From Eutreptiella sp. 'Long Island Sound 2002' (Eukaryota > Protista > Euglenida), in the NCBI GenBank assembly GCA_964036045.1, contig OZ038379.1, positions 31,310,001 to 31,374,000 on the forward strand: a stretch of DNA of 64,000 nt. The letters are read 5' to 3'. The first letter of the stretch is position 1; every line of letters starts with the position of its first letter. Under the pieces are notes generated by a model, which worked only from the letters and a program-made list of their open reading frames with translations, did no database searches and was not told where the DNA came from. This document shows, piece after piece, positions 2,801-64,000 of this stretch. The translations under genes were made by a program, and so were the position numbers.

Positions 2801-3029
2801 TCTACAAAGGAGCGGATGTGGTGGAAATGAGCATAAGATGTGTGGGTGAAATTTGGTGAAACTGGGCATTCGTCTTTTAGCATCCACTGGAATATGTATA
2901 GAGGCCGAGGGGCGGGGAGGTGGGCCGAGTCGAGTTCAGGCGCCCGTGTCCTCCCCTACAAGCCCCCCGCCTGAGTCTGCACGGCAGACAAGAGGGACGA
3001 GCTAGAGGGGACTAGGTCTCTTCCGTACT

Positions 3030-8304: not shown

Positions 8305-8343
8305 TGGCCCCGGGTGGGGGTGGACGCCACCGCAACGCAGCAG
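8305..8343 (-). other. 2A/StopGo-like peptide motif (LLRCGGVHPHPGP) immediately before APE, copy A
   Basis: Direct translation; same position as in copy B. 2A-like D(V/I)ExNPGP motifs are known upstream of APE in L1Tc and other LINEs. Confidence 0.55.
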
Positions 8344-11300
8344 CGGGAGGGGGGGGGGGGGGTTCCGTCGCCATCCTATCAGGGGGGGGGGAGAGGCAGA
8401 GCCACAGTCAGCCCAGCGGGGGGAGGGGGCGGAGAGGGGGGAGTCCTCGACCCACCCACGAACACAACTACCGGCGGTCAGAGGGCGTGAGGGGAGGGGT
8501 CAGAGGGAGGGCAACCTCACATGCCTGCAAGTCAGCTGTTGCTCCTCGGCCACACGGGCCCACTGCACCGAGGCCGGGTAGGCGGTGGAGGTCACCAGCC
8601 CAAGGTAGGCGCGCCAGGAGGTGGAGGGGTCGGCGTGGGGGGAGGCGGCGGCCCACCGGCGGCGGGCGGTAGAGGGGGGGGGGGGGCTGAGGTGCGCGAG
8701 GGGCGACTTTGCTCCCATCCCTCGGCGAGGCGATCGGCCTCTCGGGCCACCTCGTGCAGGAGGTCCCGATGGGGGCCGGGGGGACGCGGCGGAGGACGTC
8801 TAGCCACCGGGCGGTGGCCCAGACCTCGCCCAGCTCCGGCAGTCGGTCCACCGGATGTCAGTGAGCCGGGGGAGGAGAGTGTGCACCTCGGCGCCCACCT
8901 CCCGCCAGGTCGCTAAGGGATCGGGGTCCGGAGGGGCGAGCGGGCGGGGTCGTTGTCCCACACCCGGTGCCACCACTCGACGGCCACGGCGTGGGGCCTA
9001 CCGGCGGCCGTCTCCCCCTCGAAGAGGGTGAGGCGGCGGCACGGGTGGAGGTGCCAGCAGTGGCGCCAGGTACCAGCGCCACGTGTAGAAGAGACCGGCG
9101 CTCTGGTCGTCGGGGCGGGGGGGGGGGGGCGCAAAGAGGACGTTGGGGTACCTCCATTGCAGCGCCCGGGTGATGGTGGCCCTCTTGGACGGCCAGACGG
9201 GGCCGTCCGCGCGCTGGTGGTGGGTGTGCCACCCATTCCACACCCCGGCGAGGAGGTCCCGGAGGCGCAGGACCCCAGGGCACAGCCCTTCGAGGGAGGC
9301 GAGGACACAAGTGGTGCTGGCCCACCCTCGCCGCTGGCGGGGAGCGGGGAACACCACCAAGCAGGGCAAGGCCGTGGTGCCGCCGCCGGTGCCAGAGGAG
9401 TTGGGGGGGGGGGGGCGTGGTGCCCGCGCCCTCGCCCTCGGCCGTGGTCCTCGTGCAATGAGCAAAAGAAATTGGTGGCAGTCTGCAGGGCGGCTAGCGG
9501 AGGGGGTAGAGGGGGGGGGGTCGTGCCCATGTGCCCCACACCTCCTCCCGGCCATTCCCCAGTTAGGCGGTACTTTCCGTCAGCCCAGACTACGGTCACT
9601 GCCCTTCCCGGGGGGGGGGGGGGCTGACACGTTCCCGGCCGCTCCCAACGCGAGGGACAACCGTAGCGGTGCGGCGGGTGGGTCCCTTGCCACCCCGCCA
9701 CCGCCCCACCTTGGAGTGGGACCCCGTGCCACCACCCGAACATGACCCCCCCCCCCCCGGAGGGATTCAGGGCCATCACCTCGCCGCCGGGCGCCCTCGT
9801 GGGCTGTGGGCGTATCGACACCCTCCTACCGCATAGAGGGTCCGGTTCCTGAGCCCGCCCCGGGGGGAAGTCCACCGGTGCTTTAACCGCCGCCATTACC
9901 ACCACCACCAACCCTGGGCGCAGCCGGTGAGGTATCAGGGGGAGTGCCCTTGGTGACAGCCCACCCAAGGTCTCCACTCGGGCCCCTGTCGGCCATTGCG
10001 GGCATGCCGCCATCCACAAGCAGAGGGTCAGGACGCAGAGGGATAAGTGTATTAAAGGATGTCCTCGTCCTCCTCATTCACGTCGACCGCCACCGACTCT
10101 CCGTTTGCCATGGCCAGGTCCCCCGTGTGGTCCGGGGCCTCCACCGCCGCTGCAGGCTGCTGCTGCCCCCCCCCCCCCCAACCCCTCCGGGCGCGTCATT
10201 CGGGCCCTCGGGCCCACGGGCTGGTAATGCCCCAGGCGGCAGCTGCGGGTTGTCCGCTCCCAAAGGCGGTCGAGGAGGCGGTGTCGGTTGCGCCCAGCCG
10301 GACCCCCTGCGAGTCTTCAGGCACCCCCTCCAGCTCGAGGTCAAAGACCGGCCAGTCAAGTGTGCTGTGGGCCAGCTAGGGGCAGCGGTGGAGACGGATG
10401 TTCACCTCCGACCCAAAGGCCTCCTTGGCGTAGCGCCAGAGCTGCGCATACTCGTCCACCGGCAGACCCAGTTGTGCCGGGTAGCCCCGGACGCGCACAG
10501 AGGTCGGCTAGGACGGGGTTAGCGCACCCAGCAGGCTGGCGATATGCGCCACAACCGCGGAGCTCGCCAGCTTAGTCCCCCAGGGGCGTACCCCCACGTT
10601 GCCGGGGGCACCTCCGTCCACTAGCCCGACGAATAGCGTCTGGAGCTTCTAATCCTCGGCGAGGGTCTCCCACACCTCCGGGGAGGGCCCGCGATGCTCC
10701 GGCGGCTGCTTGAACCACAACACATACGCGGGGTGCTGGCAGGCAGAGCCTGTGACTATCCACGGCCAGAAGTGGACACCCCGGGCTTTGCCAATGCCGC
10801 GCATAACCAGCAGCACCACCTCGGTCGGGAGGTCCGCACAGAACTCGACCTTCAACCCTCTGACCGCCGCCTGCATGGGTGGGGGGTGCGGCAAGGCTGC
10901 CTCCATTAGTGGCTTGAGGTGCCGCTAGGCGTGGTCCTTGCCGAAAGAACCCACATGGAGCCGGCGCAAGTCGGCGTCTGCCAGAACTGCCGGGTCCGGG
11001 ATGCAAACGACCCGGACCGCGGACGGCAGGGGGTCCAGCGGCGCGGGGTCTACATCCGGGAGCTCGGCCGCCTCCCGCTTGTCATCCTCCGGGAGACACT
11101 CCCGGACGAGCTGCAGTACGTGCCCCGGTGGAGCAGGGTCCACCACCTCTGGGTTTGCCATCTCCTAGGGCCGGTGCTCGGTCCGAACCACGCCCTGCAG
11201 AGACATGCCCGGCACCGCGAGGCTGGTCTTCGAGCGGCACAGGGCTTGCAGCAGGGTCACCACTGTGGGGGCCGCTTTGCTACCCCCCTGGACGTGTGAC

Positions 11301-12395
11301 CCGCTGGAGGCCGTCGTGCGCCGCGATGGCGGCCGCAGCCGCAAGGTGGGCCTTGTGGACCGTGTAGCCCACCAGGGCCACACACCGCAGGGCCCCCTCC
11401 TGGGGGGGCTGCTTCCACTCCGCCGGGTGGCGCCCCGGCGTGATTTGGGTGATGCCGCACTCCCGGACCGTGTCCCGGGACTCACCCTGGTAAAGGCGGT
11501 GCAGCTGCACCGCCGTCGCCGAAGGCAACAGGGCCAGAGGGCAGTCATTGTGGGCTGTACCAGCGGGGGCGCTGCTTTAGCGCGGCCAGCGGCCGCCACC
11601 ACCCGCACCGCGCCCGGCCAGGATCCCAAAGCCGCGGACCACGTCGCCAAGGCGTAGCTCACGCCGTCTGGGCCCGTTGGGGGGGGGGGGGGCTCCTTGA
11701 CGCCCCCCACCCCCTAGAGGACGATATTGCCCCGGGCGACTTTGATGTCCTCGTGCGCCCAGCCAGGCTGCGAAGAGGCGAAGGGGTGGGTGGGGAGGTG
11801 TCCTGACCGGCAGATGCACCCATCGCGGTGCTCCAGGCTCCGCTGGCTGCTACCCTTCCCCGTCCACACGCACGGGGACCGGGGAGGAGAGGGGGGGGAA
11901 TGCTGGGGGGAAGCCGCAGCTTGTTGCGCCTAAGCGTTCCGGGGGCGCCGGTTGGGTCCCCGTCCCGCTAGCTGCCAGCCGGGCGCCGCCCGGGTCGTGG
12001 GGGCAGTGTTCTTGGTGGCCGCCGCCGTTTTCGTCGTCACCGCCGCGGCGGCCGGCGCCGCTAGGGCCGCCGGGCTCTAGGCCGGGGTTGGTTCGCCCCG
12101 TGACTGACCCACCTCACGGCAGAGGGTGTTGATTACGCCCTCGAGGGACACAGTTTGGCGTTGTAGCGATGCGATCATTGCTTGCTCGGCGGTAGGGGGG
12201 GGGGGGCTGGGCGGGCCTACCACCCCCCTTTCTCCCCTTGGAGCGGGAGCGGCTACGCGCCGCCCCCTCGTCAATGGCTGTGAGCAGGGTGCCCACAAGG
12301 AAAGGAGCCAGCGCCGTGCCTATGGCCGTAAGGACCGCGGGGCGCTGTTGGAGGGCAGCCAGCTGGGTGGCCACCCCCTCTTGATCACCCATCAT
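8344..12395 (-). pseudogene. Copy A ORF1 / pre-APE coding region (~4 kb, disrupted, no recognised domain)
   Basis: ATG ATG at 12395 (MMGDQEGVATQLAALQQRP...), then a coiled-coil-like stretch (AEQAMIASLQRQTVSLEGVINTLCRE). Blocks from ~11200 to 8350 translate to similar peptides in copy B. Confidence 0.7.
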
Positions 12396-12457
12396 GCTCA
12401 AGGCGCTCGGGCGAAGGAAAAGGGAGATGCAGAAGCGCCAAAATAAGAGACAAGAGA

Positions 12458-12509
12458 GTTGTAGCTCAGCTAGGCAGCTTCACTGCGTGTAGGTTCACAA
12501 CAAGAGGCC
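12458..12509 (-). ncRNA. Degenerate minimal HDV-like ribozyme at the 5' end of LINE copy A
   Basis: GGCCUC-UU-GUUGUG-A-ACC-UACACGC-AGU-GAAGCU-GC-CUAG-CUGA-GC-UACAAC has the same layout as the intact copy at 61733, with three mismatches (P1, P1.1, P3). Begins exactly at the TSD boundary. Confidence 0.6.
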
Positions 12510-39230: not shown

Positions 39231-42200
39231 ATGTGGAGCCTTGTGGTTCTATCTTGGTTGTTTTGCACGTACGGGGGTGAAACCACCCCGGCATCGAGCC
39301 CCGTCGTGCCTGGCGTGCCCCCGTTGCAGCGCTCCAATTACCAGGGCCCGCAATTTGAGTGTGATCGCTCGGCTCGTGTCATGCCCATCGAACATGTAAA
39401 CGATGACTACTGCGATTGTGCGGACGGTTCCGACGAGCCGGGCACCAGCGCGTGCAGCGGGAGTAGTACTCCGTTTTGGTGCGCCAATGTGGGGCACAAG
39501 GCAACCACCATCCCAAGCTCGCGCGTGCGTGACGGAATTTGCGACTGCTGCGACGGGTCCGATGAGGTTGGGAAGACTGGGGAAGGGCCGTGCCACGACG
39601 CTTGTGCAAAGGAGGCGCAAGAAGCGGCGCGACTTCGGGAGGAGAAGGCTGAGCGCATCCAAAGGGCAAAGGGCGCGCGACTGGAAGCTATGGCCATCGG
39701 GAGGGAGGCCCGTGCCCAGCGGCAAGCGCGAGTGGACCAACTAACACGCGAAATCGCGGAGCGCGAAACCACGCTAGAGACCGTTCTTGCCCAGAAGGAG
39801 CACGAGGAGGAGCTGGAGCGACACGAGCGCGCGCAGCAGCGGGACGAGGCCGCGCGGCAGTTTAGTATTGCCGTGCTTCCGCACTTGAACGCTCTGCCGC
39901 CGGACCATCTCCGGGATATCATTGTGTCGCTTTGCGCCAAAGACCCCTCTGTCGCAACCAAGTTGGCAACACAGGCATTGAAGGCGCCTTTGGACGGGCA
40001 AGTCACGCTCAATCATTCGGAAGTGGAGTCCATTGCCGGTGACTTGCACCACCTCCTGAAACCAGAGGACCGCGAGCCAGAGGAAGTGCACTACGATGAC
40101 GATGACGATGACGATGACGAAGATTCTGGAAGTTACGAGCACGACGACGACCACTATGACTCCGAATACCCCTCGGAATACGACCCAGAGTACGACTCCG
40201 AGTTTGCCTCCGAGTACGACCACGATTACGATGGTTCCGAGTACGACCAGTACAACCCCGAGCACAATCCTGACCACGAGTTTGTGCCAGAAGATGTGTT
40301 AGCTGGACCACGAGAACCGGTGAGCTTTCCCCATTCTCCCATTGAGCCCATTCATGGGATCGCTGAGTTAGCCATACGTTGAAGGAAAGTTTGTCCCCCG
40401 AAAGGATTGAAAGGACTGAAGCAAATGTTCGGTGCCAATTGAACGGCAATCAGAGACTGGATAACAGGTGGTGTGCTGGTGTTGAGACCGGCATTCTTCA
40501 GTCAACGGTGTGCAGAATGGTACCCGGGCTGCATTCAGATCCGTCCCGTGCTGCAGTCGCGTGTTTACGCCACATGGCTGTTTGCATGCCCTCCCAAAGG
40601 TACTGCGCTCAGGGTAGTCCGATCGCCACCGGAATTCAGAACAACCCAATCACCTACAGGCTGTCTGAACACCGCCCTGCTGGGGAAGGGGTCGTCACCG
40701 GACCGACTGATAGTTACACTGCAACGACACTGCACTACACCAACGGTTTCCTGCCTGCCCACCAAGGTCATAACCGATGGTGGCCTAACCTGATACCTGC
40801 ACCTGCACCAGTGCTGTGGGTGCAGTGGGCCCCGTTGCCTTCTTTCATGCCCTTCTGCATTTGGAGGATGGGCAATCACAGTACATCAAGGCCCCTATCC
40901 CCCGTTGCCGTCAGTGCATGGTATGCATAGCACGCATGGCCAGTTTGTGTGCAGAGGGGCAGGGGCCCATCAAGCTCTCTGCCTGGTCTGGTATGGCGGG
41001 TAACGGATGGCGGTTGGGGTACTGGTATGGCGGGGTAACAGATAGCGGTTGGGGGTAACCGACGGCAGTTGGGGGGTAACCGACGGGGATTGGAGGGTGA
41101 CTGTGCACATTCTATTTTGTAAGTGACATATATCCCATCCCACCCCTGCGGACGGCCGGGGATAGATGGCCAAGTGTTGACAGGCCCGCGGACGCATGGA
41201 CACACACTCCTTTTCACGAAGCGCCAGGCAAACGGATGGGTAGACAGACCAACAGACAGACGGATGGAAAGACAAAGTGATGATATTAATGATGGCGGGA
41301 TTTTGACAGACCTACAGCCCTGGGCTGGGCTGGGCTGGGATCCCCTTTTTTGCAAATGCTCCGAAGCTGATTCGATTTGCACGATTGTCTGCTTGGTTGC
41401 GTTGGGACACTCGCATCATCAAGTGCAGACGGGCTTGCGGCACCCGCATCATTTCTGCACATCAGGACCCTGTGGGTGAAGACGGGTGGATGGCCTGGGG
41501 CTGTGACGCGGTGGTCGTCACGCGGGCAGCGTGGATAACGACCAGTAAGACGGGCGAGACCGAACGGTCATGCAAGGCTTTGTGCCTTGAAAATGAGGAG
41601 TGTAACAGCATCAACTTCCGGGGAGACGTAGGAGAATGTGCGCTTTGGCACGCCCATGAACCCCGGCAGCCTGAGGTGACGCGTGAAGGGTACGCAGGGT
41701 GGTGCACGTGGTCCTTGCCACCCACTGACTTTGACGGATTTGACGAATTTGAGGAGGGCCATGTCGAGCACGGCCCCGATGGCGATGCAGAAGCTCGCGA
41801 CGGCAAAGATGAGGGCGGTCGTGCAGGTCTGGAACCCGAAGCCAACCCCGAAGGCAGCGATTTAAGGGCGGACGAGGAGGGAGCGCCCGCTCCCAGTGCG
41901 CCCGGCGACGGCCAGGACGACTCTGATGTGCCGCGCCACGAAGGGGACATGCCAGCCGGCGATGCGGCGGTGCCATTGGGGTCGGAATTGGAACGTCAGG
42001 CCACCGAAGGCAAGCAGCGGCTGGTGGAAGCGCTGCATTTGGAAAAGGTGTCGGGGGAGGAGCTTGCGCCCCTGGCGCTGGCGCTGGCACGCAACGCGTC
42101 CCGGTACGCTGCGCTCTTGCGGCTGATGGCGCAGGAGATCCCGGTGCAGGTTTCTTCCCTCTGTGGCCCTACGCTACTAGACCCTGTTGCCTACCTCCCC

Positions 42201-43489
42201 CTGCCTCTGAGGCTTGCAGGGGACGAATGAGCCTGAAGCGGGTGGTAAGCCCCATGATCCTTGGGCACCATCCGTTGGCCTGTGCTTCGGTGACAAAGGG
42301 CCAGTGCGTGTTGTGCATATCGGATGCGTATTGGATGTGCTTCGGTTGCTTTTGGTGCTGTCCGCATACGACTGCCACCCTTCTTCTGGCTGGGGAAGCT
42401 GGCGGGGCGAGGGGCGACTCTCTGGGGGGGATGGGGGTGCAGGGTGGGGGGACGCGGGCAGCTTTGTAAGATCCCGTCGCTCTGCCGCTTTCGAGGGACT
42501 TGTATGCTGCATGAACGAGCAGCAAGCCTTTGCTTTAGGTGAGTCCCATCCCACGAGACGCATTCGGGGGGGGGGTCCACAGCCTTGAAGACGGGAACCC
42601 CAAGCCCTCAGCAAGTGCCTTAAGTGCAGCAGCACAGGCATTGTGAAACGAAAACGCAGTCCGTCGTGTGGACACCAGAGGCTGGGCCCAGAACAGTTTT
42701 GCACACGCCGGCAGTCTTCAATCTATGGATCAATACCCGACACGCCAGAGTCTGGAATGGGTCTGCCGTGGTCGCGAAGCATGAAGGCAAGTTGCAGGTG
42801 CAGAGCCAAGGCGGGGCCAACGTAGGCGCGGCAAAGGCAGCGGCAGGCACCTCAGGGCAGGGGGCGGCAACCAGGGGATACAAGCAGCAGAAGGGGCGAC
42901 GAGTAGCAAGACAGGGACTAAGAGGACGGGCGTACAACGAAGCGTGCGCAGCAGTGGAGAGTCCCTGGGATGTGAACAGTTGACCGCAGCCCTCCTTTTG
43001 CCCCCACCCCCTCTGCAGGCCCCAGAGCAGGTTCGGCACACGAGGCCGGAGGCAGAGGCGGCGCGGTCGGCGCAGAAGGAGGCGCAGCGGACCAAGCGCG
43101 ACCTCGACAAACAGCTGCGGGACGTCCGTGAGGAGGCCGAGCTGGACTTCGGCCCAGAGGACGAGTTCTACCGAATGAAGGGCCGGTGCTTCACGCGGGA
43201 TTCGGGGGGCGAGACGTACCACCTGTGCCCGTTCGGTGAGTCTCGGCAGGGCCACCGTTCCATCGGCCGGTGGGAGGGCTGGGTGGCTCAGACCGAGTGG
43301 CACTCCAAGTACCGCATGATGCGGTTCACGGGTGGAGACTCGTTGGGCTGTCCACAGCCGCGGGCGCTGGACGTGCAAGTGGACTGCGGGGTGGAGGAGC
43401 AGATCGTCAGAGTCGAGGAGCTGGAGATGTGCAAGTACTCGATGTTGTTTCTGTGCCCGGCCGCGTGCACCGACGATCTGCTGCAGTGA
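39231..43489 (+). CDS. PRKCSH: Glucosidase II beta subunit (PRKCSH/GTB1-like), 3 exons, ~747 aa
   Basis: Exons 39231-40319, 41466-42149 (alternative donor 42143) and 43019-43489; GT-AG, all phase 0. Signal peptide; N-terminal NDDYCDCADGSDEPGTSAC and DGICDCCDGSDE; coiled coil; D/E/Y-rich tract; C-terminal MRH (FGPEDEFY..KGRCF..YHLCPF..Q..IGRWEGW...R..V.VDCG...E..MCKY..CPAAC). Confidence 0.92.
41005..41095 (+). repeat. Short GC-rich minisatellite in PRKCSH intron 1
   Basis: ggggtaac(c/a/g)ga(c/t)ggc(a/g)gttggg repeated about 4 times. Confidence 0.7.
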
Positions 43490-52079: not shown

Positions 52080-52390
52080 GCAACTTACCGCAAAAAAAAA
52101 ACAACAACACACATTTACCGCAAAAAAAATTACACCACTCCACGATTTTTTTGTACATGAGTTACATTTTTAGCTGCAAGAACCCCGTCTAGCCTCCTGT
52201 TCCCAGAGTCCGGGGTGTCCAGGTGAAAAGGGAGGAGGATGGAAGGCAGTCTGATAAGTGTATGTTGTAATTCGTCTCATTTTGTTTTACGGGAAATGCG
52301 TGTAACAAAAAAATCGTCTAGCCGTATAATTTTTTTTGCGGTAAGTCGTGTAAACCCGTCACACGCATTACCGCAAAAAAAAATTACATG
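52080..52390. repeat. AT-rich block with repeated taccgcaaaaaaaa(a)ttaca motifs in both orientations
   Basis: Direct copies near 52086, 52115 and 52368; inverted copy near 52327. Confidence 0.6.
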
Positions 52391-55300
52391 ACTAGACAAT
52401 TTTTTTGTACACGCGGGCACGTCTAGGCAGGGTGTGGTTCGGAATGAGCGCCAACCCTCGGGGGCAGCCAGACCGGAGGTGGTGAACCCCGCTCCGCCGG
52501 GGCACGTGCTGCAACTCGTCTGGGAGCCTCTCCCGGAAGATGACGAGCGGGAGGCGGCCAAGCTCCCGGATGTGGACCCCGCGCCGCTGGACCCCCTGCC
52601 GTCCACGTTCCAGGCCGTCTGCGTCCTGGACCCGGAAGTTTTGGCGGACGCCAACTTGCGCTGGCTCCATGTGGGTTCTTTCGGCAAGGACCATGCCTAG
52701 CGGCACCTCAAGCCGCTAATGGGGGCGGCCTTGCCTCACCCCCCGCCCATGCGGGTGGTGGTCAGAGGGTCGAAGGTTGAGGTCTCTGCGGACCTCGCTA
52801 AAGAGGTGGCGCTGCTGGTTATTCGTGCCAGTGCCACAGGCCGGGGAGTCCACTTCCGGCCGTGGATAGTCACGGGCTCCACCTGCCACCATCCCGCGTA
52901 TGTGTTGTGGTACAAGCAGCCGCCGGAGCGCCGCGGGCCCTCCCCGGAGGTATGGAAGACCCTCGCCGAGGATCAAGAGCTCCAGGTGCTGTTCGCGGGG
53001 CTTGTGGACGGGGGTGCCCCTGGCAACGTGTGGGGGCACAGATCTGGGGAACCAAGCTGGCGAGCCACGCGGTTGTGGCGCACATCGCCAGCCTGTTGGG
53101 TGCGCCGGCCCCGTCACGGACGCCCTCTGTGCGGGTCCACGGCTACCTGGCACAACTGGGTTTGGCTGCGGATCCGTATGCGCAGCTCCGGTGCTACGCC
53201 AAAGAGGCCTTTGGGTCAGAGGTGAACGTCCGCGTCCACCGCTGCACCCAGGTGGCCCACAGCACCCTCAACCGGCCGGTCTTTGACCCCGAGCTAGAGG
53301 GGGTGCCTGAGGACTGGCAGGGAGTCCGGCTGGGCGCGCCCGATACCCGCCTCCCCGACCGCCTCTGGCAGTGCACAACCCGCAGCTCCTGCCGCGGGCA
53401 CTACCAGGAGGGTGTCTGTGCGCCCAAAGCCCACGAGGGCGCCCCGGGGTGAGGCGATGGCCCTGTGTCCCCACCGGTCGGGGGGGGGGGGTTGCCCGGG
53501 CGGTGGCAGGGGGCCCCATGCCCAAGTGGGGCGGTGGCGGTATGGCAGGGGGCATAGCCGCCGCGGCACTCCGGCTGCCCCTCGCACCGAGCGTGACTGG
53601 GAACGTGCCAAGGGGCTCCTCCCCTCTCCCCCCCCCTCCCCCTTGGTGGGATAGTGTTAGCAGGCCAGGTAGTCAGCGAGCGCCGCCTAACCGGGAAGCC
53701 ACTAGGGTGGCATGCGCAACGTCTGTGGGCGGTAGCTTGCCCGCGGGGGCCGACGGCAGCGCCGGCGGCGCCTAGGCACGAGGACGTGGAGAGGGCGGCA
53801 CCACGAGCAAACTCCTTGGCGACCCGCCGGCTGCGCTCAAGGCTGGTGGTGGTGGTGGTGATGGCGGCGGTCCCGGCACCGGTGGATTTCCCCATTGGAT
53901 GGGCTCAGGAACCGGACCCTCCATGCGGCAGGAGGCTGTCTATACGCCCACAGCCCACGAGGGCGCCCTGCGGCGAGGTGGTGGCCCTGGGTCCCTCTCG
54001 GGCGGGGGATCACACCCGGGTGGTGGTAGGTGGCCCAAGTTCAGGGTGGGGAAGTGGCGGGATGGCACGGGACCCAGCCGCCGTAGCGCTGCGGCTGTCC
54101 TTCGCGCTAGGCGTCGCCAGGGGGGTGTCAGGGACCCCCCCTTGCCTAGGAACGGTAGTGGCCGCAGTCCGGGCCAACGGTGTGCACCACCTAACCAGGG
54201 AATGGCAGGGAGGGAGCATGGGGCAGCTGGGCGCAACCCCCCCCCCCCCCCACCATCCCCCCACCCCCTTGCCCCCTGCGCTAGCCGCCCTGCGGCGTGC
54301 CACCAGTTTCTTTTGCCCATGGCACAAGGACCACGTGGTCGGGGCTAAGGGTGAGGGCGCGGGCACCCCGGCCTGCCCCCCCCACTCCCCTGGAACCGGC
54401 GGCGGCACCACAGCCTCGCCCTGCTGCGGTGGTGGTACGGCCAGGCTGCCCGGGTGTTCCCCGCCCGCCATTAGCGAATAGGGTGGGCCAGCACCACTTG
54501 TGCCCTTGCCCCCCTCGAAGGGCTGTGCCCTGGGGTCCTGCGCCTCCGGGACCTCCTCGCCGGGGCGTGGAATGGGTGGTGGCACACCCACCACCAGCGT
54601 GCGGACGGCCCCGTCTAGTTATCCGCCTTCCACGGCCCCGGTGGCCCCGAGTTTGGGACCAATGGGGCCACCGTCGGCCGGGCGCTGCAATGGAGGTACC
54701 CCTGCGCGCTCTTTGCGCGCTCCGGCCGCCCCGACGACCGGAGGGCCAGTCTCTTCGACACGTGGCCCTGGTACAAGGCGACACAGTTGTAGGAGGAGAC
54801 CGGCGCGTTGATGTGGTGGCCGACCCGCCATGGCCGGGTGGAGCATCAGGACCCCCCGACTGCTAGCACCTCCACCCACGCCGCCGCCTCACTATCTTCA
54901 AAGGAGACGGCCGCCGGCAGGCCCCACACCACGGTGGTGGACGGGTGGGGACGGGTGTGGCACAACGATCCTGCCCGCCAGTCACCCCCCCTCCAACCCC
55001 TACCCCTTGGCGAACTGGCGGGAGGTGGCCGCCGAGGTGCACGCCCACCTCCTCCGCCTCACCGACATCCGGTGGGCCGCCCTACCGGAGCTGGGAGAGG
55101 TCCGGGCCACCGTCCGGTGGCCAAACGACCTCCGCCGCGTTCCCCCCGGCCCCTATCGGGGCCTCTTGCACGAGGTTCCCAGAGAGGCCGATCGCCTCGC
55201 CGAGGGATGGGAGCACGGTCGCCCCCCGCGCACACCAGCTTCCCCCCTGCCGCCTGTCTCCGGTGGACCGCCGCCTCCTACCACGCAACCCCCCCCCCCC

Positions 55301-55580
55301 CCCCGCCTCCCTGCGCGCCCACCTTGGGCCAGTGACCTATGTCGCCTGCCTGGCCTCGGTGGAGCGGGGCCGTCCAGCCCAGGAGCAATAGCTGACGTGC
55401 AGGCATGCGATGTTGCCCTCCCTTTGACTCCTCCCCTCACGCCTCCTAAACGCCAGCATTGAGTTTGTGTGTGGGCCGGGTACTCCCCCCCCTTCCCCCC
55501 CTCCCCCCGCTGGGGTGACCGTGGCTCTGCCTCTTCCACCCCCTTGATGGGATGGCGATGGGACCCCCCCCCCCCTCCCA

Positions 55581-55619
55581 CTGCTGTGTGGCGGTGATGT
55601 GCACCCCCACCCAGGGCCG
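55581..55619 (+). other. 2A/StopGo-like peptide motif (LLCGGDVHPHPGP) immediately before APE, copy B
   Basis: ctg ctg tgt ggc ggt gat gtg cac ccc cac cca ggg ccg, then LRAAQAYVMSL (start of APE). Confidence 0.6.
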
Positions 55620-58600
55620 TTGCGCGCGGCACAAGCCTACGTCATGTCCCTGCGCATGCACTGGCACACGGTCGCTGAGTGGCAGGTGGACGTGGTTCTG
55701 CGCTCCGAGACCCGTCTCACGGCAGTCGCGCAGCCAGTGATGCGCGCCCAGGCCGGGGCCTCGGGGTGGCAAGCTTTCTGGGGTGCCCCCCCGGAATCCG
55801 GGAGGGGCGGGGGGGCATGTGGGATGCGCCGGCCAGGGGGTGGGGATCATGGTGCGCTAGGGCATTCCCGTGAGACAGCTCCTTCCCCCCAAAGGGGCGC
55901 CCCGGGGCGAGGAAGACTCAGTCGCCCAGACCCTGTGGCACTCCACCCGATGGTGCCATGTTTTGGTGGGCTTGGGGCGGGGATCGGAGCCACTACATGC
56001 CCAGGCGGCCTACGGCGTCTCCTCGCAGCCGGTCCTCAACCTGGCCTTGTGGGACTAGGCCACGCAGTGAGTGGCGCGCCACGGGGTGGCCCCTTGGCCG
56101 GCGGGGGGGGGGGACCTAAACTTCGACCTCGAACGCCTACTGCGGGCCCCCCCATCCGTCCTGGCGTTCCTCCTGGTCCGCTGGCTGGTGGACGCAGACC
56201 TTGAAGTGGCGTCCGCCTTCGGGCGGCACCCCCTTTGCTCGTACCAGGGCCCGGAGGGTACGAGCCTCTCGCGCATTGATGGGCGCTGGTCGTCACACGG
56301 CGCTGCTCCACGCAGCGGAACTGCTCCCGCGCTGGGCCATCCCGGGCCACACCCCGGTGCGATCCGACTTGCACCTGAAGGGTGCATCTTAGCGGGTGGT
56401 GAAGTTCATCTGCCCCAAGCCCACTGAGTTGGCGCCACGGGAGGAACATGAGCGGCCCCTCCTCGTGCATCGCCTCGTGGAGCCCATGGAGGCCGGCTAG
56501 CGAGCGGCCCTATCCAGGAGTGGGATGGACCCGGCCTGGGCCTTTTGGACCATGACGGCAGAGGAAACCCTCCTCGTCCTCTCCTGCCTGGGCATTGCCC
56601 CGGACTCCCTTCCGGCGGAGGCCGCCTTGCCGCTTGCCCCGCCGCACCTGCCCCGGGGTAGGGGGACCGACCAGCTGCTTTGTGAGGTGTGCCTGTGCCC
56701 AAAGCAGCGCAGGGACACCGGGGGGCCGCTCACTTGCCCCGTGGTGCGCATCCAGGCGGCCCACGGCCCCCTCCGGGACGTCCTCCGCTTGCGGGAGCGA
56801 CCGGCTCACGGCGTGGGCACCAGCCGCGCAGGGTGCAGCAGGCGTGGGCAGCGCTCCGGCGCCGCCTCGAAAAACTCTGCGCACTCGGCCCGGAGTATGC
56901 CGGCCGGGAAACGGGCCGCACACATGACCGGCTGGCCCCGCTGGAGTCGCTGTGCCGCCTCCTTATGAGGGTGGCAGGCAAGGTTTGGGCCACGCTGTGC
57001 ACGGAGGACCAGAGCCTCCTGCGCGAATGGCGCGTCTAGCTGGAGGAGGTTTGGACTTCCGACTAGGGGGCAGTGTACCGGTGGCTCAAGGATGAGTCCT
57101 GCGCCCCGCCGGTCACCTTCCTCTCCAGGCCGACTTGGCGGAAATGGATGGCCTCCTACAGGACGCGTGGCAGCCAATAAACCGCCAAAAAAGACCCCGA
57201 CCCGGATCCCACAGTCTTCCTCCGCCGGTATGGGCACCATGTTTGGCGGGTCCCCATGATTGCCTCGCGGCTAGATGGCCCCCGCCTGCGCAAGAGACTC
57301 TCCCGCATGAACCCCTCGGCTCTGGGATTGCAGGTGGCCGACCTCCGCTCCCTCCCCAACATGCTGCTCGGTTGGCTGGCAGACCTCCTGTGGGAAGTGG
57401 AACGCGGTGGCCGGCCCGCCTGGCCGAGGGCTACACTGCCCTCATCCCCAAGGAGAGCCCGCCTGAACCCTTGAACACCCGCCCGCCCACGGTTGTGTCC
57501 ATGGTCTACAGGATGTGGGCGCATGTGCGCTTGGCGGACGCCATCGCGTGGCAGGAGTCTTGGGCCCACTCAGCGGCCTTTGGCTTCCGCCCGGCCAGGA
57601 GCGCCGTGGACGGGGCGGCGGTGACACACATCCTTTTGGAATTGTGTTGTCTCCGGGGGTGGGCGGTGGCAGGGATGAGTACCAACTGCGTCCAGTGTTT
57701 CAATCTCATCCCCCAAGCGGTCGTGGTGGCCCTGGCGTTGGAGCTGCGCATGGACTCGGGCACATGCCGTGCCCTCAAGGCCATGTACAAGCATCTCCGC
57801 CGGGCCTTCAAGGTCGCCGGGGCCCTTGGCCAATGGTGGCAAGCCACCACTGGCATCCTCCAGGGCTGTCCCCTGTCGGTGATCCTCGTGAATGTCCTCA
57901 CCACAATCTAGAAGTGGGAGGTGGACTCCCTACGCCGACAGGTGTGCTCGCGGACAGCTGCCCTCCCCCCCACTCTTGACGAGGACGCGGTGGCCGACCT
58001 GGAGGCGGGGGCCCAACTCCCCCTCAAGGACGCGGGTCCGGGCTACGCCGCGTTAGGGTCGTCGGGCTATGCGGACGACACCCAAGCGGTGGCCCTAGGC
58101 GCGGCCTCCCTGCAAGGGACGGTCCCCATGACGGCGGAGGTCACGGGTCAAGTTGTGCGCGTGGACAAGTCTTGCTCGTGGGTCGAGGGGGAAGAGGGCC
58201 CCCCAGCGGTCCTCCTCCGGGGTGTCCCAATCCCGCTGGCGGAAACTTTCCGCCAACTTGGCGTGGACGTCGCCATTGGGGGCTCCAGGATAACAGGGCC
58301 GGTGCTTTCCCGGCGCTTGGAGGCGGGCCGGAGTGCCCTCCGCCGCCTCCCCCATCTCTCCACCTACGACCGCCGGGAACGGGCCATCAGCACGCTGGTC
58401 ACCCCTCTGGCACTCCATGGAGTGGCCGTCGCGTTGGTGAAGGACTCCAACTTGCGGGGACTGGAGACTGCAGTTGTGCTGGCCCTGTGGGGAGCTACGT
58501 GTCTGTCCCGGGCCAAGGAGATTGTCTTCTCGGTTCGTTTCCAAGGGACACAACATCTCCCCGGTGATGCACACACGGTGCGAACGGCTACTGTGGTTGG

Positions 58601-60915
58601 CCCATGTGGCCCGGAGACTGGGGGTCACCCAGGTTTTCACCTAGGCCATCTGGGAGTCGGGCGGCCACCCGCCTCGGGCGGACACCCACCCTGGACGGGG
58701 ACGGTGGGGCGTGTGCTCCAAACGGCGGTTACCCTGGGGTGGAGCCCACACGAGGGCTAGTGGTGCTGGGACGTCCTGGGGCAAGAGTACCAGCTGCACT
58801 TTGTGCAGGAGCCCCTCCACCAGGTGCAACACCGGGTGCGGGACAGCCTTCGCTGCCATTCCTCACGCCAGCTGGAGGTGCGGCGCCCGGTCACCTTTGG
58901 GGGGATGGGCGACAGGGCAGATGGCTGACCTGCCGCGCGGTCATCGCGTTGCCTCCACGGAGCTGGAGAAGTTGCTGCTGCACGGCCTCATGCTGGAGCC
59001 TTGTGGGCGGCAGTGAGGGTGTCGGGCCACGGCACGCGGACCAACTCCGCGTGCCCCCAGTGCGGGGTGGCGCACGAGGACGAGGTCCACGTCCTATGGG
59101 ACTGCCCGGAGTGGGAGTAGGACAGGGAGACATGGCGTCCCTGGCTGCGTGACGCGGCGGCGGCCATCCCCCAGCTTGGGCCGCCAGACTAGTGGCCGGC
59201 CTGCTTGCCGAGGGCGGGCCTCTCCCCCCTCCGACTGGCGCGGGGGGTGGAGCGGGAACTTCTTGACGAGTTCCTGCACCGCCTGTACGGCATGTACCTG
59301 GCGGTCTTCGCCGCCCGCATGGCCGCGAGCCGCGGGGACCAGGCAGGCCACACGGACTCCGTGTTCTCGGACCAGCCGCGGCCGCGGCCCCGCAACCCTT
59401 TCCTCTGGGACGACTTCGTCAGCCCCCTCCCGGGGGATGCAATCCGCAACTAGCCGAGCCTTTGGCCGGGGTCCCTGCCGGGCTGGCGGTCGCCCCAGGA
59501 CTTCGTCTAGGACTTGGTGAGGTGGGCAAGGGCGCTGGCCTGGATGCTGGGGCCAGCGAAAGTATCCTGGGCTGGGCTAGCCCTGGACTACGAGGCCTTT
59601 GCGGGGCGGGCGCTCCCAGCCTTCCCGGATCACCCTCTGCTGGGTACGCGCCTGCCGCTCGCCCAAATCCTGCGCAAGGCGGCAGGGCTGGTCGAGCACC
59701 ACCTAGTGGCGGACACACTATGCGGGGCCCCCCTCGGGCTTTCTCGCTCCCTCCTCCCCCTCGGAGGCCGCGTGTGCGCTGGTCTGTCGGCCCGTCCGTT
59801 TTTGCGGCATGCCACGATTCGATGCTGCAGCTTATGCACCCGGCGACACACTGCCGGGACACGTGGATCCGGCGCCTGCAAGCGCCGGCCCGCATGCGGC
59901 CGCCAGTAGGTGACCGTTTTCTCATGGACGACTACCCCCGCCCCCTCGAGGGGGGGCTACCGCTTCTGCCGTACGCCAGGAGGCCCCCGCGGGCGCCGCC
60001 CAAGAGCGTTCCGCTCGCGGCCCCGCAGCGCAGCCGCCCACCGGCAGCGGGCATTGGCACTCAGGGCGCGCTCTGCTTGGAGCATGGGGCACCATTGTGC
60101 CGCAGGTGCAGAAGCCTAGGCTGGGGCATCAGCCGCTGCTGCCGTCCCGGACACAAGGGGCACACCGACCCTGCGGCGGGCTCGCGTTGCCCGAAGGCCG
60201 CGCCTCGGGTCACACCGGGCCGCCAGGTGCTTGTGCCCCAGGACCGGCGCGCTGGGGCGGCGGCGCTGTCCTCCTGGCTCGCCTCCCAAGCCCTCCCAGT
60301 CTCGGCCCCCCCGGCCTCTCGCCGGTGCACGCCCCCCCCCCCCCCCAGACGCCGGGGGCTCGCGCTCCCTCTGCCCTGGGTCTTGAGGGCTCCAGACCCC
60401 CGAAACGCGCCAAACCCAACCTCCTTGCTGACCAAGGGAGGACAGTGAGTGTGGGACCAGCGCAACCGGGAGGTGGGGCAGCCAACCCGTTCTCCCCCCA
60501 ACAACTGCTGGAGGCAACTGCGGTCTGGCGCCAACAAGCGCCCATCCAGAGGTTGGCCTGCCAAGGGCGCCACCGCCGCCACAGGGCTCACCCCCAGCAC
60601 AGCAACCCCCCCCCCCCCGCCGGCGGCTGAGCCTCCGGCATCGCTCCCCGATGTTTTTGGCTGCATCTCGGCGGCCCAAAGTAGCCGCGCCGTACTGCGG
60701 CGTCGATCCCCACACTGGGGACGCAGGCGGCCGCAGCCGAAGGCCACCGGGTCCATCGCGGACATGCTCTGCGCGCCCCCTCCCCGCCCCGTACCCGGCG
60801 ACACGAGGGGGGCCCCCTCTGACCCCATGGCGAACGCGCCCCCCACGCCTTCGCCACCTCAGTGCACACTGCCGCAGCGGCGGCAGCATGGCAGGGCAAG
60901 CACAGAAGAGACTTA
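55620..60915 (+). pseudogene. Copy B ORF2: APE, RT, Zn finger and C-terminal extension
   Basis: VDVVLRSETRL, GGDLNF, RIDG, IPGHTPVRSDL; FGFRPARS, QCFNLIP, GILQGCPLS, GYADD (58068-58079); C-x2-C-x4-EDEVHVLWDC. Numerous TAG stops and frameshifts. Confidence 0.92.
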
Positions 60916-61061
60916 GTCCCCTCTGGCGCGTCCCTCGTGGCCGCCGTGCAGACCTAGGCGGGGGGCTTGTACAGGAGGCCACGGGCGCCTGAACTCCACT
61001 CGGCCCACCTCCCCGCCCCTCTGCCTCTGTATATATTCCAGTGGATGCTAAAAGACGAATG

Positions 61062-61732
61062 CCCTCTTTATGTGTTTTTCACCCTATTTGGGTGTTGGGT
61101 GGGGATGGGATGGGATGGGAATGTGTCCAACACCAGTATTGACGTGGCCTGAAGCGCTGCGCTTTGAGACCCTGTGGCTGACCTGTCAGAGCGGCGCAGG
61201 CTCCCCCGCGTTGGACTCGGTTGTAACAGGACACCGCTGACCCTGGGCGACCCAGGCGCAGTGAATCCCGACACACTCGTGTGGGGGGGGGGGGGGTCCC
61301 AATGGGGCCGGGGCACAACCTGCTTATGCAGTTTTGCAGCCTTGGCAGCTCAAAAATGGAAATTTCCAAAACTGATTTTTTTTGATATTATGACCATCCA
61401 CAATGATCAAATATCCTATGCAAAGCCTCTAGGGAAGGACACGGGCGCCTAAACTGGACTCGGCCCACCTCCCCGCCCCTCTGTCTCTGTACATAGACCA
61501 GTGGACGTTAATCGACGAATGCCCTCTTTATGTGTTTTTCACCCTATTTGGGTGTTTTGGGGTGAGAGGGGGATCCCAAAGGGGTTGGGGCACAACCTGC
61601 GCATGCAGTCTTCCAGCCTCGGCAGCTCAAAAATGGAAATTTCCAAAACTGATTTTTTTGATACTATGACCATCCACAATGATCAAATATCTGATATAAA
61701 GCATGTTTTAGCCCCTCTTTATGTGTTTTTCA
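61062..61732 (+). repeat. Tandem units of a ~190-bp-core repeat that serves as the LINE target
   Basis: ccctctttatgtgtttttca at 61062, 61522 and 61713. gggcacaacctgc..atgcagt..cagcct.ggcagctcaaaaatggaaatttccaaaactgatttttttgata.tatgaccatccacaatgatcaaatatc at ~61310-61415 and ~61588-61692. Confidence 0.9.
61427..61521 (+). mobile_element. ~95-bp 3'-terminal LINE fragment (severely 5'-truncated insertion)
   Basis: ggacacgggcgcctaaactggactcggcccacctccccgcccctc...ccagtggacgttaatcgacgaatg matches the 3' ends of A and B and is followed by the same 20-bp target. Confidence 0.85.
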
Positions 61733-61785
61733 GGCTTCTTGTTGTGAGCCTGCTCGAGGCGAAGCTGCACTAGCCGAGCCGCAAC
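61733..61785 (+). ncRNA. Minimal (P4-less) HDV-like self-cleaving ribozyme at the 5' end of element C
   Basis: P1 GGCUUC/GAAGCU with G1-U wobble; P2 GUUGUG/CGCAAC; P3 GCC/GGC; 7-nt L3 UGCUCGA (U..G reverse-wobble positions kept); 2-bp P1.1 GC/GC; J4/2 C-C-G-A. G1 is the first base after the 20-bp target. Confidence 0.72.
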
Positions 61786-61786
61786 C

Positions 61787-63919
61787 ATGTTTCTGTCGAG
61801 GGGGGCCTCCCAGGCTGCGGGGAGGGCTCCCCTTGGCGCTCTTGCTCCCCGGGAGCTACCCGAGAGGCACTGGCCCTCTCTGCCGCTAGCGGCGACGGCC
61901 GCGCCTGCCGCCCCGCCCTCACGCCGAGGCCGACAGCGCCGGAGCGAAGACCGGAGGAGACCGCTAGCGGGGGGCACAACGCGTCCCCTCGCAGCAGCGG
62001 TCGCAACAGCCATCGCGGCGACGGCTGTGGCGGCGAGCTCGTCGTCGATGCGTGCAGATTCGGGCGCAAGCGTGGAGCCGAGCGCGGCCCAGGTGGCGGC
62101 ATGGGCAGCGGCAGCGGCAGCCCGCGGCGCCTTTTACGACGAGTACGTTGACTTCTTCTACGCCGAGGACGACGAGGAGTGCCCGTTTTGCTGTGGGCAG
62201 CTGGGCAGCTGCTACTGCCACGCGGAGCCTCTCGAGGAGGACATTACCGTGGGGCAGTTTCTGGAGCGGTACGTTACTGCACCTGCAGTGCGGGCCGCCT
62301 CTGTGGCTGCCGTGGCCGCGGGTGTTGTCGCTGGCAGCCAGCCCGCTGCCTTGGCCTTGGACGCTGCTGACGGTCCAGTGGAGCAGATCGCCGAGAAGGC
62401 TGTGCAGACCCCCGTGGAGCGCGTGATCGAGAAGGTCGTGCAGGCCCAGTCAGTGCAGAAGATCGTCGAGCGCCGTGTCGACGTCCCTTTCGAGGTTAAG
62501 GTCCGCCCGGAGGTCCGCGTCCCGCACCCTGTCCAGAAGGTTGCGGAGCGCCCTGAGCCATACCCGGTTGACAAGGTCGCTGAGGTTCCTCAGCCATACC
62601 CTGTCCAGAAGGTCGTCGAGCACCCTATGGCTGCTCCCGGTACGGCCATCGCTGGCTCCCAGGCCTCTGCCTTGGCCTTGGACGCCGCTGAGAGCCGCAT
62701 TGACGGCGAGTACTTTGGTGCTCAACCTGTGGCCCCTGCTGATTGGGCCACACTGCAGGCCGACCCCCTGCAGCTGTGGGGGCCACCGGAGGCATCTTGG
62801 GCAGCTGCAGTCAGCGCGCTGCCAGCTAACCCCCTTGCCCTGACCCAACCATGTGGATTCCCTAGGGGGAGGGGGGTGGAGGAGGTCCTAACCAGCCCCC
62901 CCTCCCCCCCTAAGGATGATTTCCCGCCTTTTTCACTGCCGGACCTCGTGGGGGCAGTGGTACAGGCGGAGGCGGAGGTCCGCTTTTTAATACAGCAGCA
63001 CAGGGCTGCGTGGCTGGAGCTGGAGTCTTCAAAACTCCAATGCTGCCTGGAGGCGACGCCCCGGGGTCCGCCGAAGCCGCGAAGGGCCCCCGCCGCCCCC
63101 CTGCAGCCACCAGCGCTGCCATTGCTGCAGGGCACCGCAAGTTCATTGCTGGCAGGCCCCGTCGCCTACCTGCAGGATGTGGCGCTCAACGGCGGGGCGC
63201 TGCCCCAAGGAGATGCGGGCCCTCCGCAGAAGGGGCCCTCAGGCCTACCTCCTCACCCTACCCCTAACCTTGTCTCAGGGCAGGGCAGGGCAGAGAGCTG
63301 GGAGGGGGCAGGGTTTGGGAACCCCCCTCCCTCCCCTCCCCTCAAGAAGACGGCGGGGGCTGGTTTTAACGGCTCCCTGCTGGCTGCAGGGTGCCCCAAT
63401 GGCGGGGCGTCCCGTTGGCTGCCCCCCCCCCCTATGGCGGCGGTGGGGGAAGACCACAACTTCCCCGTGCCGGATAGGCAGGCGCGTGCAGCGGCACAGT
63501 GCTGGGAGCCAAGGGCCTCCACAGGGCTGCCACAGGGGGCCAGCAGGTCGAGGCGGGGCAGGGCCAGGGCCAGGGCACCGGGCGACAGCGATGGGGGCCC
63601 ACGGGGCTTCACGGGAAGCAAAGGCGATGGGGGGTCCTGTCACAGGCTCCCGCTGACGGGAGCGCCCCCCGGGGCGATGGGAACCCCACCCCACAGATGG
63701 TCAGGGATCCAGCGGGTCAGGGCAGGGCATGGCTCGGGACAGGGCTCAGAAGGCAGGTGGAGGGGGCCCGTGGGGCTGCCCAGGGAGCAGAGGAGGAGGG
63801 GGTATGGCGGCGACCCCCCACTGACGGGAGCGTCCTCCGGGGCGCCGGGTAACCCGTCCCGTAAGGGCCCAGCACCGCCCCGGCGGCTGCACGGACGGGC
63901 GAGCTGGGAAGTGACTTAG
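61787..63919 (+). CDS. 710-aa ORF1-like protein of element C containing an articulin-like VPV-repeat block
   Basis: Uninterrupted ORF with ATG 2 nt after the ribozyme P2. Acidic/Cys patch (YDEYVDFFYAEDDEECPFCCGQLGSCYCH). 62378-62626 encodes VERVIEKVV...IVERRVDVPFEV.VRPEVRVPHPVQKVAERPEPYPVDKVAEVPQPYPVQKVVEHP. Confidence 0.7.
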   Translation: MFLSRGASQAAGRAPLGALAPRELPERHWPSLPLAATAAPAAPPSRRGRQRRSEDRRRPLAGGTTRPLAAAVATAIAATAVAASSSSMRADSGASVEPSAAQVAAWAAAAAARGAFYDEYVDFFYAEDDEECPFCCGQLGSCYCHAEPLEEDITVGQFLERYVTAPAVRAASVAAVAAGVVAGSQPAALALDAADGPVEQIAEKAVQTPVERVIEKVVQAQSVQKIVERRVDVPFEVKVRPEVRVPHPVQKVAERPEPYPVDKVAEVPQPYPVQKVVEHPMAAPGTAIAGSQASALALDAAESRIDGEYFGAQPVAPADWATLQADPLQLWGPPEASWAAAVSALPANPLALTQPCGFPRGRGVEEVLTSPPSPPKDDFPPFSLPDLVGAVVQAEAEVRFLIQQHRAAWLELESSKLQCCLEATPRGPPKPRRAPAAPLQPPALPLLQGTASSLLAGPVAYLQDVALNGGALPQGDAGPPQKGPSGLPPHPTPNLVSGQGRAESWEGAGFGNPPPSPPLKKTAGAGFNGSLLAAGCPNGGASRWLPPPPMAAVGEDHNFPVPDRQARAAAQCWEPRASTGLPQGASRSRRGRARARAPGDSDGGPRGFTGSKGDGGSCHRLPLTGAPPGAMGTPPHRWSGIQRVRAGHGSGQGSEGRWRGPVGLPREQRRRGYGGDPPLTGASSGAPGNPSRKGPAPPRRLHGRASWEVT

Positions 63920-64000
63920 TCATGACCAGCTCGTCCCTCTGTTCCGCCGTGCACCACAGGCGGGGGGCATTCAGCCCGGGGGGAGGGCGCAGAACTCTGA

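Follow-up and report, generated by a model that had tools for sequence, protein, structure and literature searches.

The window (the whole stretch of 64,000 nucleotides that was analysed) holds two LINEs of one group, ordinary host genes between them (open frames at 39231-40382 and 41385-42230, with a glucosidase II beta-subunit-like domain, E = 3.6e-35, and a PAN domain) and, at its right-hand end, a shorter element set in a satellite. This element occupies 61733-64065 on the forward strand, is 2,333 bp long and runs 65 bp past the window end (to position 3065 of locus L031). Satellite monomers of ~191 bp, which are the insertion target, fill 61062-61712 (+) with an interruption at 61427-61520, and the end of a monomer supplies the 5' copy (61713-61732, +) of a 20-bp target-site duplication (TSD), CCCTCTTTATGTGTTTTTCA; the second copy lies at 64066-64085, past the window end (L031 3066-3085). 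The interruption was left by a member of the same LINE group, severely truncated at its 5' side: the insert of ~94 bp consists of the LINE 3' tail only and shows a small target deletion in place of a full duplication.

The ends of the element are defined by comparison of its copies. In 17 of the 18 copies examined, the flanking 20-bp repeats are equal to each other, including variants private to individual copies (CTTGATG, TTTGTGCG, CCTGTTCATGTC), and in these 17 G61733 is the first base as delimited by the TSD; the eighteenth copy is without a recognisable 3' end. Young copies are 98-100% identical within 61733-64065 as against 76-92% in the monomers on either side, and identity falls exactly at 61713-61733 and 64066-64085. 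The insertion point is one fixed nucleotide of the ~191-bp monomer, TTTTTCA^CCC, with duplication of 20 bp, and 5'-truncated insertions of related elements are also placed after the target nucleotide TTTTTCA^. The drop in identity, the TSDs with private variants and the truncated insertions at the same nucleotide show that the target duplication is genuine and that the element has sharp boundaries. Elements of the group have no sequence of their own upstream of the 53-nt module with which they open.

Other origins of the upstream sequence were considered and rejected. The monomers are not a mouse-L1-like 5' UTR, an LTR or a hammerhead 'retrozyme' repeat, given the fall in identity at the TSD, the private variants of the TSDs and the lack of a hammerhead match in an Rfam scan of 60000-64000 (E <= 10), and the 20-mer is not a spliced-leader relic: it behaves as target sequence, and we take its resemblance to the Euglena spliced leader to be a loose one only. 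The junction itself, TTTTTCA|GG at 61726-61734, reads as a consensus polypyrimidine-AG 3' splice (or trans-splice) acceptor, and does so in all three families of the module. A spliced leader is carried by no copy of the element, so the template for transposition is not trans-spliced. The RNA data consist of assembled contigs only, in which neither a 5' end nor a coverage step is readable at 61733; metatranscriptome contigs from relatives abut or span 61732-61738 and diverge upstream of it, and the points at which such contigs start or end are not interpretable.

A full-length LINE of the same group, 9,643 bp long, lies at 2867-12509 on the reverse strand between 20-bp TSD copies (12529-12510 and 2866-2847) and opens with a diverged copy of the module, of type D (12509-12458). 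It is inserted elsewhere than in the satellite, at CCCA(A/G)TTTCACCAAATTTCA^CCC, a target similar to the monomer site; the likeness suggests an endonuclease recognising roughly TTTCA^CCC. The second LINE, at 52414-61061 (+), is a 5'-truncated autonomous relative that matches RVT_1 weakly at 57096-57908 and adjoins the same target motif with its 3' end. Directly upstream of it, 52320-52400 is occupied by an AT-rich inverted repeat (…TTTTTTTTGCGGTAA…TTACCGCAAAAAAAAA…). The parent LINE forms a very large family, whose 5' region is present in hundreds of copies. RVT_1 and RNase H occur at a related locus, RT and RNase H being found only in the related 9-10 kb elements. To assign an endonuclease type and a clade to the parent LINE, the open frames were compared with Pfam and PDB sequences, which yielded nothing beyond a weak RVT_1 and, in L050, RNase H.

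The element at 61733, referred to here as element C, shares with the parent LINE only nt 1-53 and the last ~170 nt. The start of this common 3' tail lies at 63870-64000 (+), and the element end at 64065 falls outside the window. Because the match at the 5' side covers just nt 1-53, homology there ends exactly at the last base of helix P2 of the module. The copy at 61733 has no RT and is therefore not itself a LINE; since only nt 1-53 and the ~170-nt tail are shared with the RT-bearing LINE, it is a 2.3-kb non-autonomous derivative of a 9.6-kb RT/RNase H LINE. A sequence-only reading of this DNA had spoken of a "LINE 5' end", and that description needs to be divided: the module does mark the exact 5' end of an element of a retrotransposon group, and the name LINE does not apply to this copy. 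At L048 5162-5900, a decayed D-type LINE 5' end follows a copy of C head to tail at the next target site, with a short coiled-coil-like open frame downstream of its module.

Element C also contains a 710-aa ORF (61787-63919, +) that matches no Pfam family and lacks RT. Of 19 copies, 16 have an open frame that runs for 530 aa or more from the conserved ATG, and a rough dN/dS between subfamilies amounts to 0.4-0.5. Homologues of the 710-aa protein are limited to five unnamed ENA proteins from one assembly. Within the ORF, 62326-62721 (+) is an articulin-like segment of V/P-rich repeats with 90-95% identity to a highly expressed host mRNA, which appears as a very abundant mRNA contig in four RNA runs. 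The resemblance points to capture of a host gene segment by the element, in agreement with a separate earlier reading that had proposed a captured articulin-like repeat.

The module itself comprises the first 53 nt of the element (61733-61785, +) and is predicted to be a minimal P4-less HDV-like ribozyme that cleaves 5' of G61733. All its parts lie on the forward strand. P1 pairs GGCUUC (61733-61738) with GAAGCU (61761-61766), with a G61733-U61766 wobble. J1/2, UU, separates the 5' strand of P1 from that of P2, GUUGUG (61741-61746), whose partner CGCAAC (61780-61785) includes the last base of the module and makes the pseudoknot. A61747 is unpaired at the P2/P3 junction, and P3 (61748-61760) pairs GCC (61748-61750) with GGC (61758-61760) around L3, UGCUCGA (61751-61757). 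The 3' strand of P1 is followed by J1/4, GC (61767-61768; together 61761-61768), which provides the partners for P1.1, where G61752 and C61753 (L3 positions 2-3) pair with C61768 and G61767. A 5-nt linker, ACUAG (61769-61773), stands where P4 would be, and measures 4-6 nt in all families. J4/2 (61774-61779) is made up of CCGA (61774-61777) and GC, and C61774 is the candidate catalytic cytosine. All four helices of the nested double pseudoknot can form, P1 and P3 being nested, P2 crossing them and P1.1 linking L3 to J1/4.

Direct reading of the sequence recovered every helix and junction listed by the sequence-only reading, as well as its ATG 2 nt after P2: the ORF starts at 61787, two positions past the last P2 base at 61785, with one base between. 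That reading had left out G61778 and C61779, which lie between CCGA and the 3' strand of P2. In an alternative layout, J4/2 is the 5-nt CCGAG and P2 has seven positions with one A-C mismatch; both layouts are seen among published theta ribozymes (PMC10879173). Most described members have a J4/2 shorter by 1-2 nt.

Copies of element C are nearly invariant within the module. Pattern searches anchored on the target identified two further module families, D and E, at the same target nucleotide, and about 140 modules of the genome are placed exactly at this target; family sequences were taken from the matched strings of these searches and joined by coordinates, and those of the D2 and Dg subvariants cover the module only to position 40. 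Family D reads GGCCUC UU (G/A)UUGUG N ACC UGCACGU GGU GAGGCU GC CUAG CUGA NC C(G/A)CAA(C/U). Family E (GGUGCUGUGUGGUGCGCCUACCCGAGGCUGCACU...), with about 20-25 near-identical copies genome-wide (e.g. G000:C4:5926576, C1:134496...), reads GGUGCU GU GUGGUG C GCC UACCCGA GGC UGCACU GU UYUUA CUGA GC CCCACC.

Eight representative modules, hand-picked as intact, form alignment A1, in which the structure derived from one of them pairs 96.8% of cells, compared with 36-59% for slid partners. Both sides change in 6 of 17 pairs of A1, with at least one such pair in each of P1, P2, P3 and P1.1, a count to be read in light of the few rows and of the common descent of families C, D and E. Three of the six P1 pairs change on both sides between families: relative to family C, E has compensatory changes at pairs 3-32, 4-31 and 5-30, and D has one at 4-31. 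In P3, pair 16-28 goes from the G-C of family C to A-U and is G-C again in one D subvariant, while P1.1 pair 20-36, which is G-C in family C, is A-U in family E and the D2 subvariant. Among the D subfamilies, the coordinate-joined copies show P2 pair 9-53 as A-U (19), G-C (13) or G-U (4) and never as A-C, with one or two single-copy mismatches besides. P2 of family E is 4 bp only, in a register shifted by 2 nt.

The unpaired positions follow an equally narrow pattern. L3 is U-N-C-N-C-G-N in all families (UGCUCGA, UGCACGU or UACCCGA) and J4/2 is C-N-R-A (CCGA, CUGA, CGAA or CGGA), so that the unpaired core is invariant across families in the U, C, C and G of L3, the G of J1/4 and C61774. Position 61774 is unchanged in 30 of 30 copies, 20 of which have T at the adjacent 61775, and the G61733-U61766 wobble is likewise invariant across all families, which, with the TSD-defined start at G61733, is the footprint to be expected of cleavage at this point. 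A reservation is that conservation among the subfamilies of element C extends beyond the 53-nt module, over the first ~220 nt. The predicted fold is kept through compensation across three element families with the same target, and the covariation to which the sequence-only reading had looked is found between families C, D and E in all four helices.

A descriptor scan was modelled on the part-split minimal HDV-like ribozymes in the theta-ribozyme supplementary data (PMC10879173): P1 of 6-7 bp opening with G, J1/2 of 0-3 nt, P2 of 6-7 positions (one mismatch allowed), P3 of three Watson-Crick pairs, L3 TNCNCGN, J1/4 opening with G, a linker of 3-17 nt and C-N-R-A plus 0-1 nt. On both strands of the window (128 kb of strand), the scan returned a single match, at 61733. 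No match was obtained in the window when the catalytic C was required to be A, G or U, nor on 300 dinucleotide-preserving shuffles of the window, and across 250 kb of loci the matches were copies of the 61733 element family only. A chance origin of the fold at 61733 is excluded. A covariance model matched the window only at 61733(+) and 12509(-), both TSD-defined 5' ends, with a score of 63 bits for the module at 12509(-).

An Rfam scan of 60000-64000 (E <= 10) returned no HDV-type or other ribozyme family, hammerheads included, and only weak miRNA-like noise. The missing HDV-type match counts as weak evidence, since the curated Rfam models of the family (HDV_ribozyme, CPEB3, drz-Agam and others) contain a P4 and are not known to score pseudoknots. 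Folded singly and without pseudoknots, the sequence takes a different nested structure at minimum free energy, one that scores no better than its shuffles (z = 0.18) and is uninformative for a pseudoknot; RNAalifold on the eight-module alignment recovered P1 and P3 unaided.

Taken together, we consider it highly probable that 61733-61785 is a minimal P4-less HDV-like self-cleaving ribozyme, as predicted, and that it makes up nt 1-53 of the members of a site-specific group of non-LTR retrotransposons. The sequence-only reading had proposed that such a ribozyme sits precisely where a eukaryotic retrotransposon begins, with its cleavage site at the TSD-defined start, and would free the element from read-through transcripts. 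This reading gains from the present comparisons: the helices covary, the core is invariant, 17 of the 18 copies have a TSD-defined start at G61733 and homology to the parent LINE ends with P2. We hypothesize that the element is transcribed within a longer transcript starting in the flanking repeats, in which P1, P1.1, P2 and P3 would then fold into the nested double pseudoknot. C61774 in J4/2 would catalyse scission 5' of G61733 and release a unit-length RNA with a 5'-OH, which may in turn be the template for target-primed reverse transcription into new insertions. Full-length copies would all start at the same G because the cleaved RNA is the template. In addition, the nearness of the ATG, seen in family C only, may point to a role in translation.

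Covariation is proof of a structure and not of catalysis, and the module could instead be a non-cleaving structural RNA, such as a binding site for the element's protein or a platform for cap-independent translation, with the 5' end set in another way, e.g. by a fixed transcription start. The R2 protein binds the 5' RNA of its element, Ruminski and co-workers are said to have reported in 2011 that HDV-like folds promote R2 translation, and an ATG one base after the module, as in family C, would suit such a role. This alternative is nevertheless improbable, since the unpaired positions that do not vary coincide exactly with the catalytic core of HDV (U-N-C-N-C-G-N in L3, the G of P1.1, C-N-R-A and the G-U where cleavage is predicted) and the layout equals that of validated self-cleaving theta ribozymes part by part. 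Moreover, a fixed transcription start would have no element sequence upstream of G1 to hold a promoter, and a translation platform does not agree with family D, where the ORF does not directly follow the module.

Lower still in probability, and in our view very unlikely, is that the 53 bp work chiefly as DNA, in the manner of Pr77: they would be an internal promoter from which transcription starts at +1, with the RNA fold secondary. Like Pr77, the module is common to autonomous and non-autonomous elements. In PMC3383444, the first 77 nt of L1Tc are described as both internal promoter and ribozyme, so a dual role is possible for the module as well, and a promoter reading is compatible with a ribozyme. 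Compensatory changes in four RNA helices, however, are not predicted by a DNA promoter. There is next to no chance that the fold is fortuitous, at a GC-rich end, and that the upstream repeats belong to the element, like the monomeric 5' UTR of mouse L1, instead of being a target duplication: tandem ~191-bp monomers do lie on both sides and BLAST alignments between copies do continue into the upstream monomer, but the fall in identity from 98-100% to 76-92% exactly at the element edges, the copy-private variants shared by the flanking 20-mers, the use of the same target nucleotide by 5'-truncated insertions, the covariation and the 0 descriptor matches in 300 shuffles refute this reading.

Beyond the ribozyme reading of this one module, P4-less minimal ribozymes might routinely process the 5' ends of several Euglena LINE families, and in the non-autonomous element the fold, one base ahead of the ATG, might also drive translation of an uncapped 5'-OH RNA, an extension that we put forward tentatively and hold to be rather doubtful. 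Euglena-type mRNAs are normally capped through spliced-leader trans-splicing. If the extension were true, a protein with a captured cytoskeletal segment would be translated from an uncapped 5'-OH RNA in a spliced-leader organism.

In its predicted structure, the module falls within the definition of HDV-like ribozymes and of their minimal P4-less subgroup. drz-Mtgn (Riccitelli et al. 2014) and the phage theta ribozymes (Kienbeck et al. 2024, PMC10879173) have the same layout part by part and ~53 nt in total: a 6-bp P1 closed by G-U, a J1/2 of 1-3 nt, a 3-bp P3, an L3 of the form U-NC-NCGN, a 2-nt J1/4 forming P1.1, a short linker for P4 and C-N-R-A in J4/2. Unlike these, the module at 61733 has an A-C mismatch in P2 besides 6 good pairs (or else a J4/2 of 6 nt). 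The minimal drz and theta ribozymes come from metagenomes and Caudoviricetes phages, mostly beside tRNA genes, whereas the present modules sit at the 5' ends of eukaryotic retrotransposons; because a tRNA-gene or phage context is absent, the module is not a theta ribozyme in the strict sense. Self-cleavage has been demonstrated for theta ribozymes and is predicted for the module at 61733. How minimal drzs arose and what they do is, according to the theta-ribozyme paper (PMC10879173), still to be settled. If the ribozyme reading is true, the smallest HDV-like ribozymes would be placed in a eukaryotic nuclear genome with a clear job, and a 53-nt natural ribozyme candidate with several covarying variants would offer a test set for structure-function work.

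The closest parallel in strategy is the 5' ribozyme of R2. As described in PMC3414825, R2 is likewise a site-specific non-LTR element in a tandemly repeated, transcribed target, its ribozyme frees the exact 5' end from a co-transcript, as proposed here for the 61733 group, and its SIDE derivatives keep the 5' ribozyme and the 3' end, as the element at 61733 does. The R2 ribozyme is larger and has P4, which the module lacks, and the R2 target is 28S rDNA in place of a 191-bp satellite. Compared with R2 SIDEs, the derivative at 61733 differs in its long, constrained-looking ORF with a captured host segment.

The closest parallel in phylogeny is L1TcRz/Pr77 of the Trypanosoma cruzi elements L1Tc and NARTc (PMC3185411), from the same supergroup, Euglenozoa. 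L1TcRz is HDV-like, forms the first nucleotides of a LINE, is common to the LINE and its non-autonomous partner and cleaves at +1 (PMC3185411); the module at 61733 is placed alike, with cleavage predicted. L1TcRz has been proposed to release its element from long transcripts without a spliced leader (PMC3185411). Conversely, L1TcRz has 77 nt, starts with C, includes P4 and doubles as a promoter, while the module has 53 nt and starts with G; L1Tc is not strictly site-specific and NARTc is non-coding, whereas the element at 61733 is site-specific and carries a 710-aa ORF. No sequence homology is detectable between L1TcRz and the module. More generally, the 5'-processing role is already known from R2, RTE and L1Tc and involves no new principle; the P4-less form and this organism are new for it, and no paper in the literature library searched connects HDV-like ribozymes to Euglena. 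If the ribozyme reading holds, the group would provide a second euglenozoan example beside L1Tc, and its combination of a site-specific LINE with a 5' ribozyme would be an R2-like strategy aimed at a satellite repeat.
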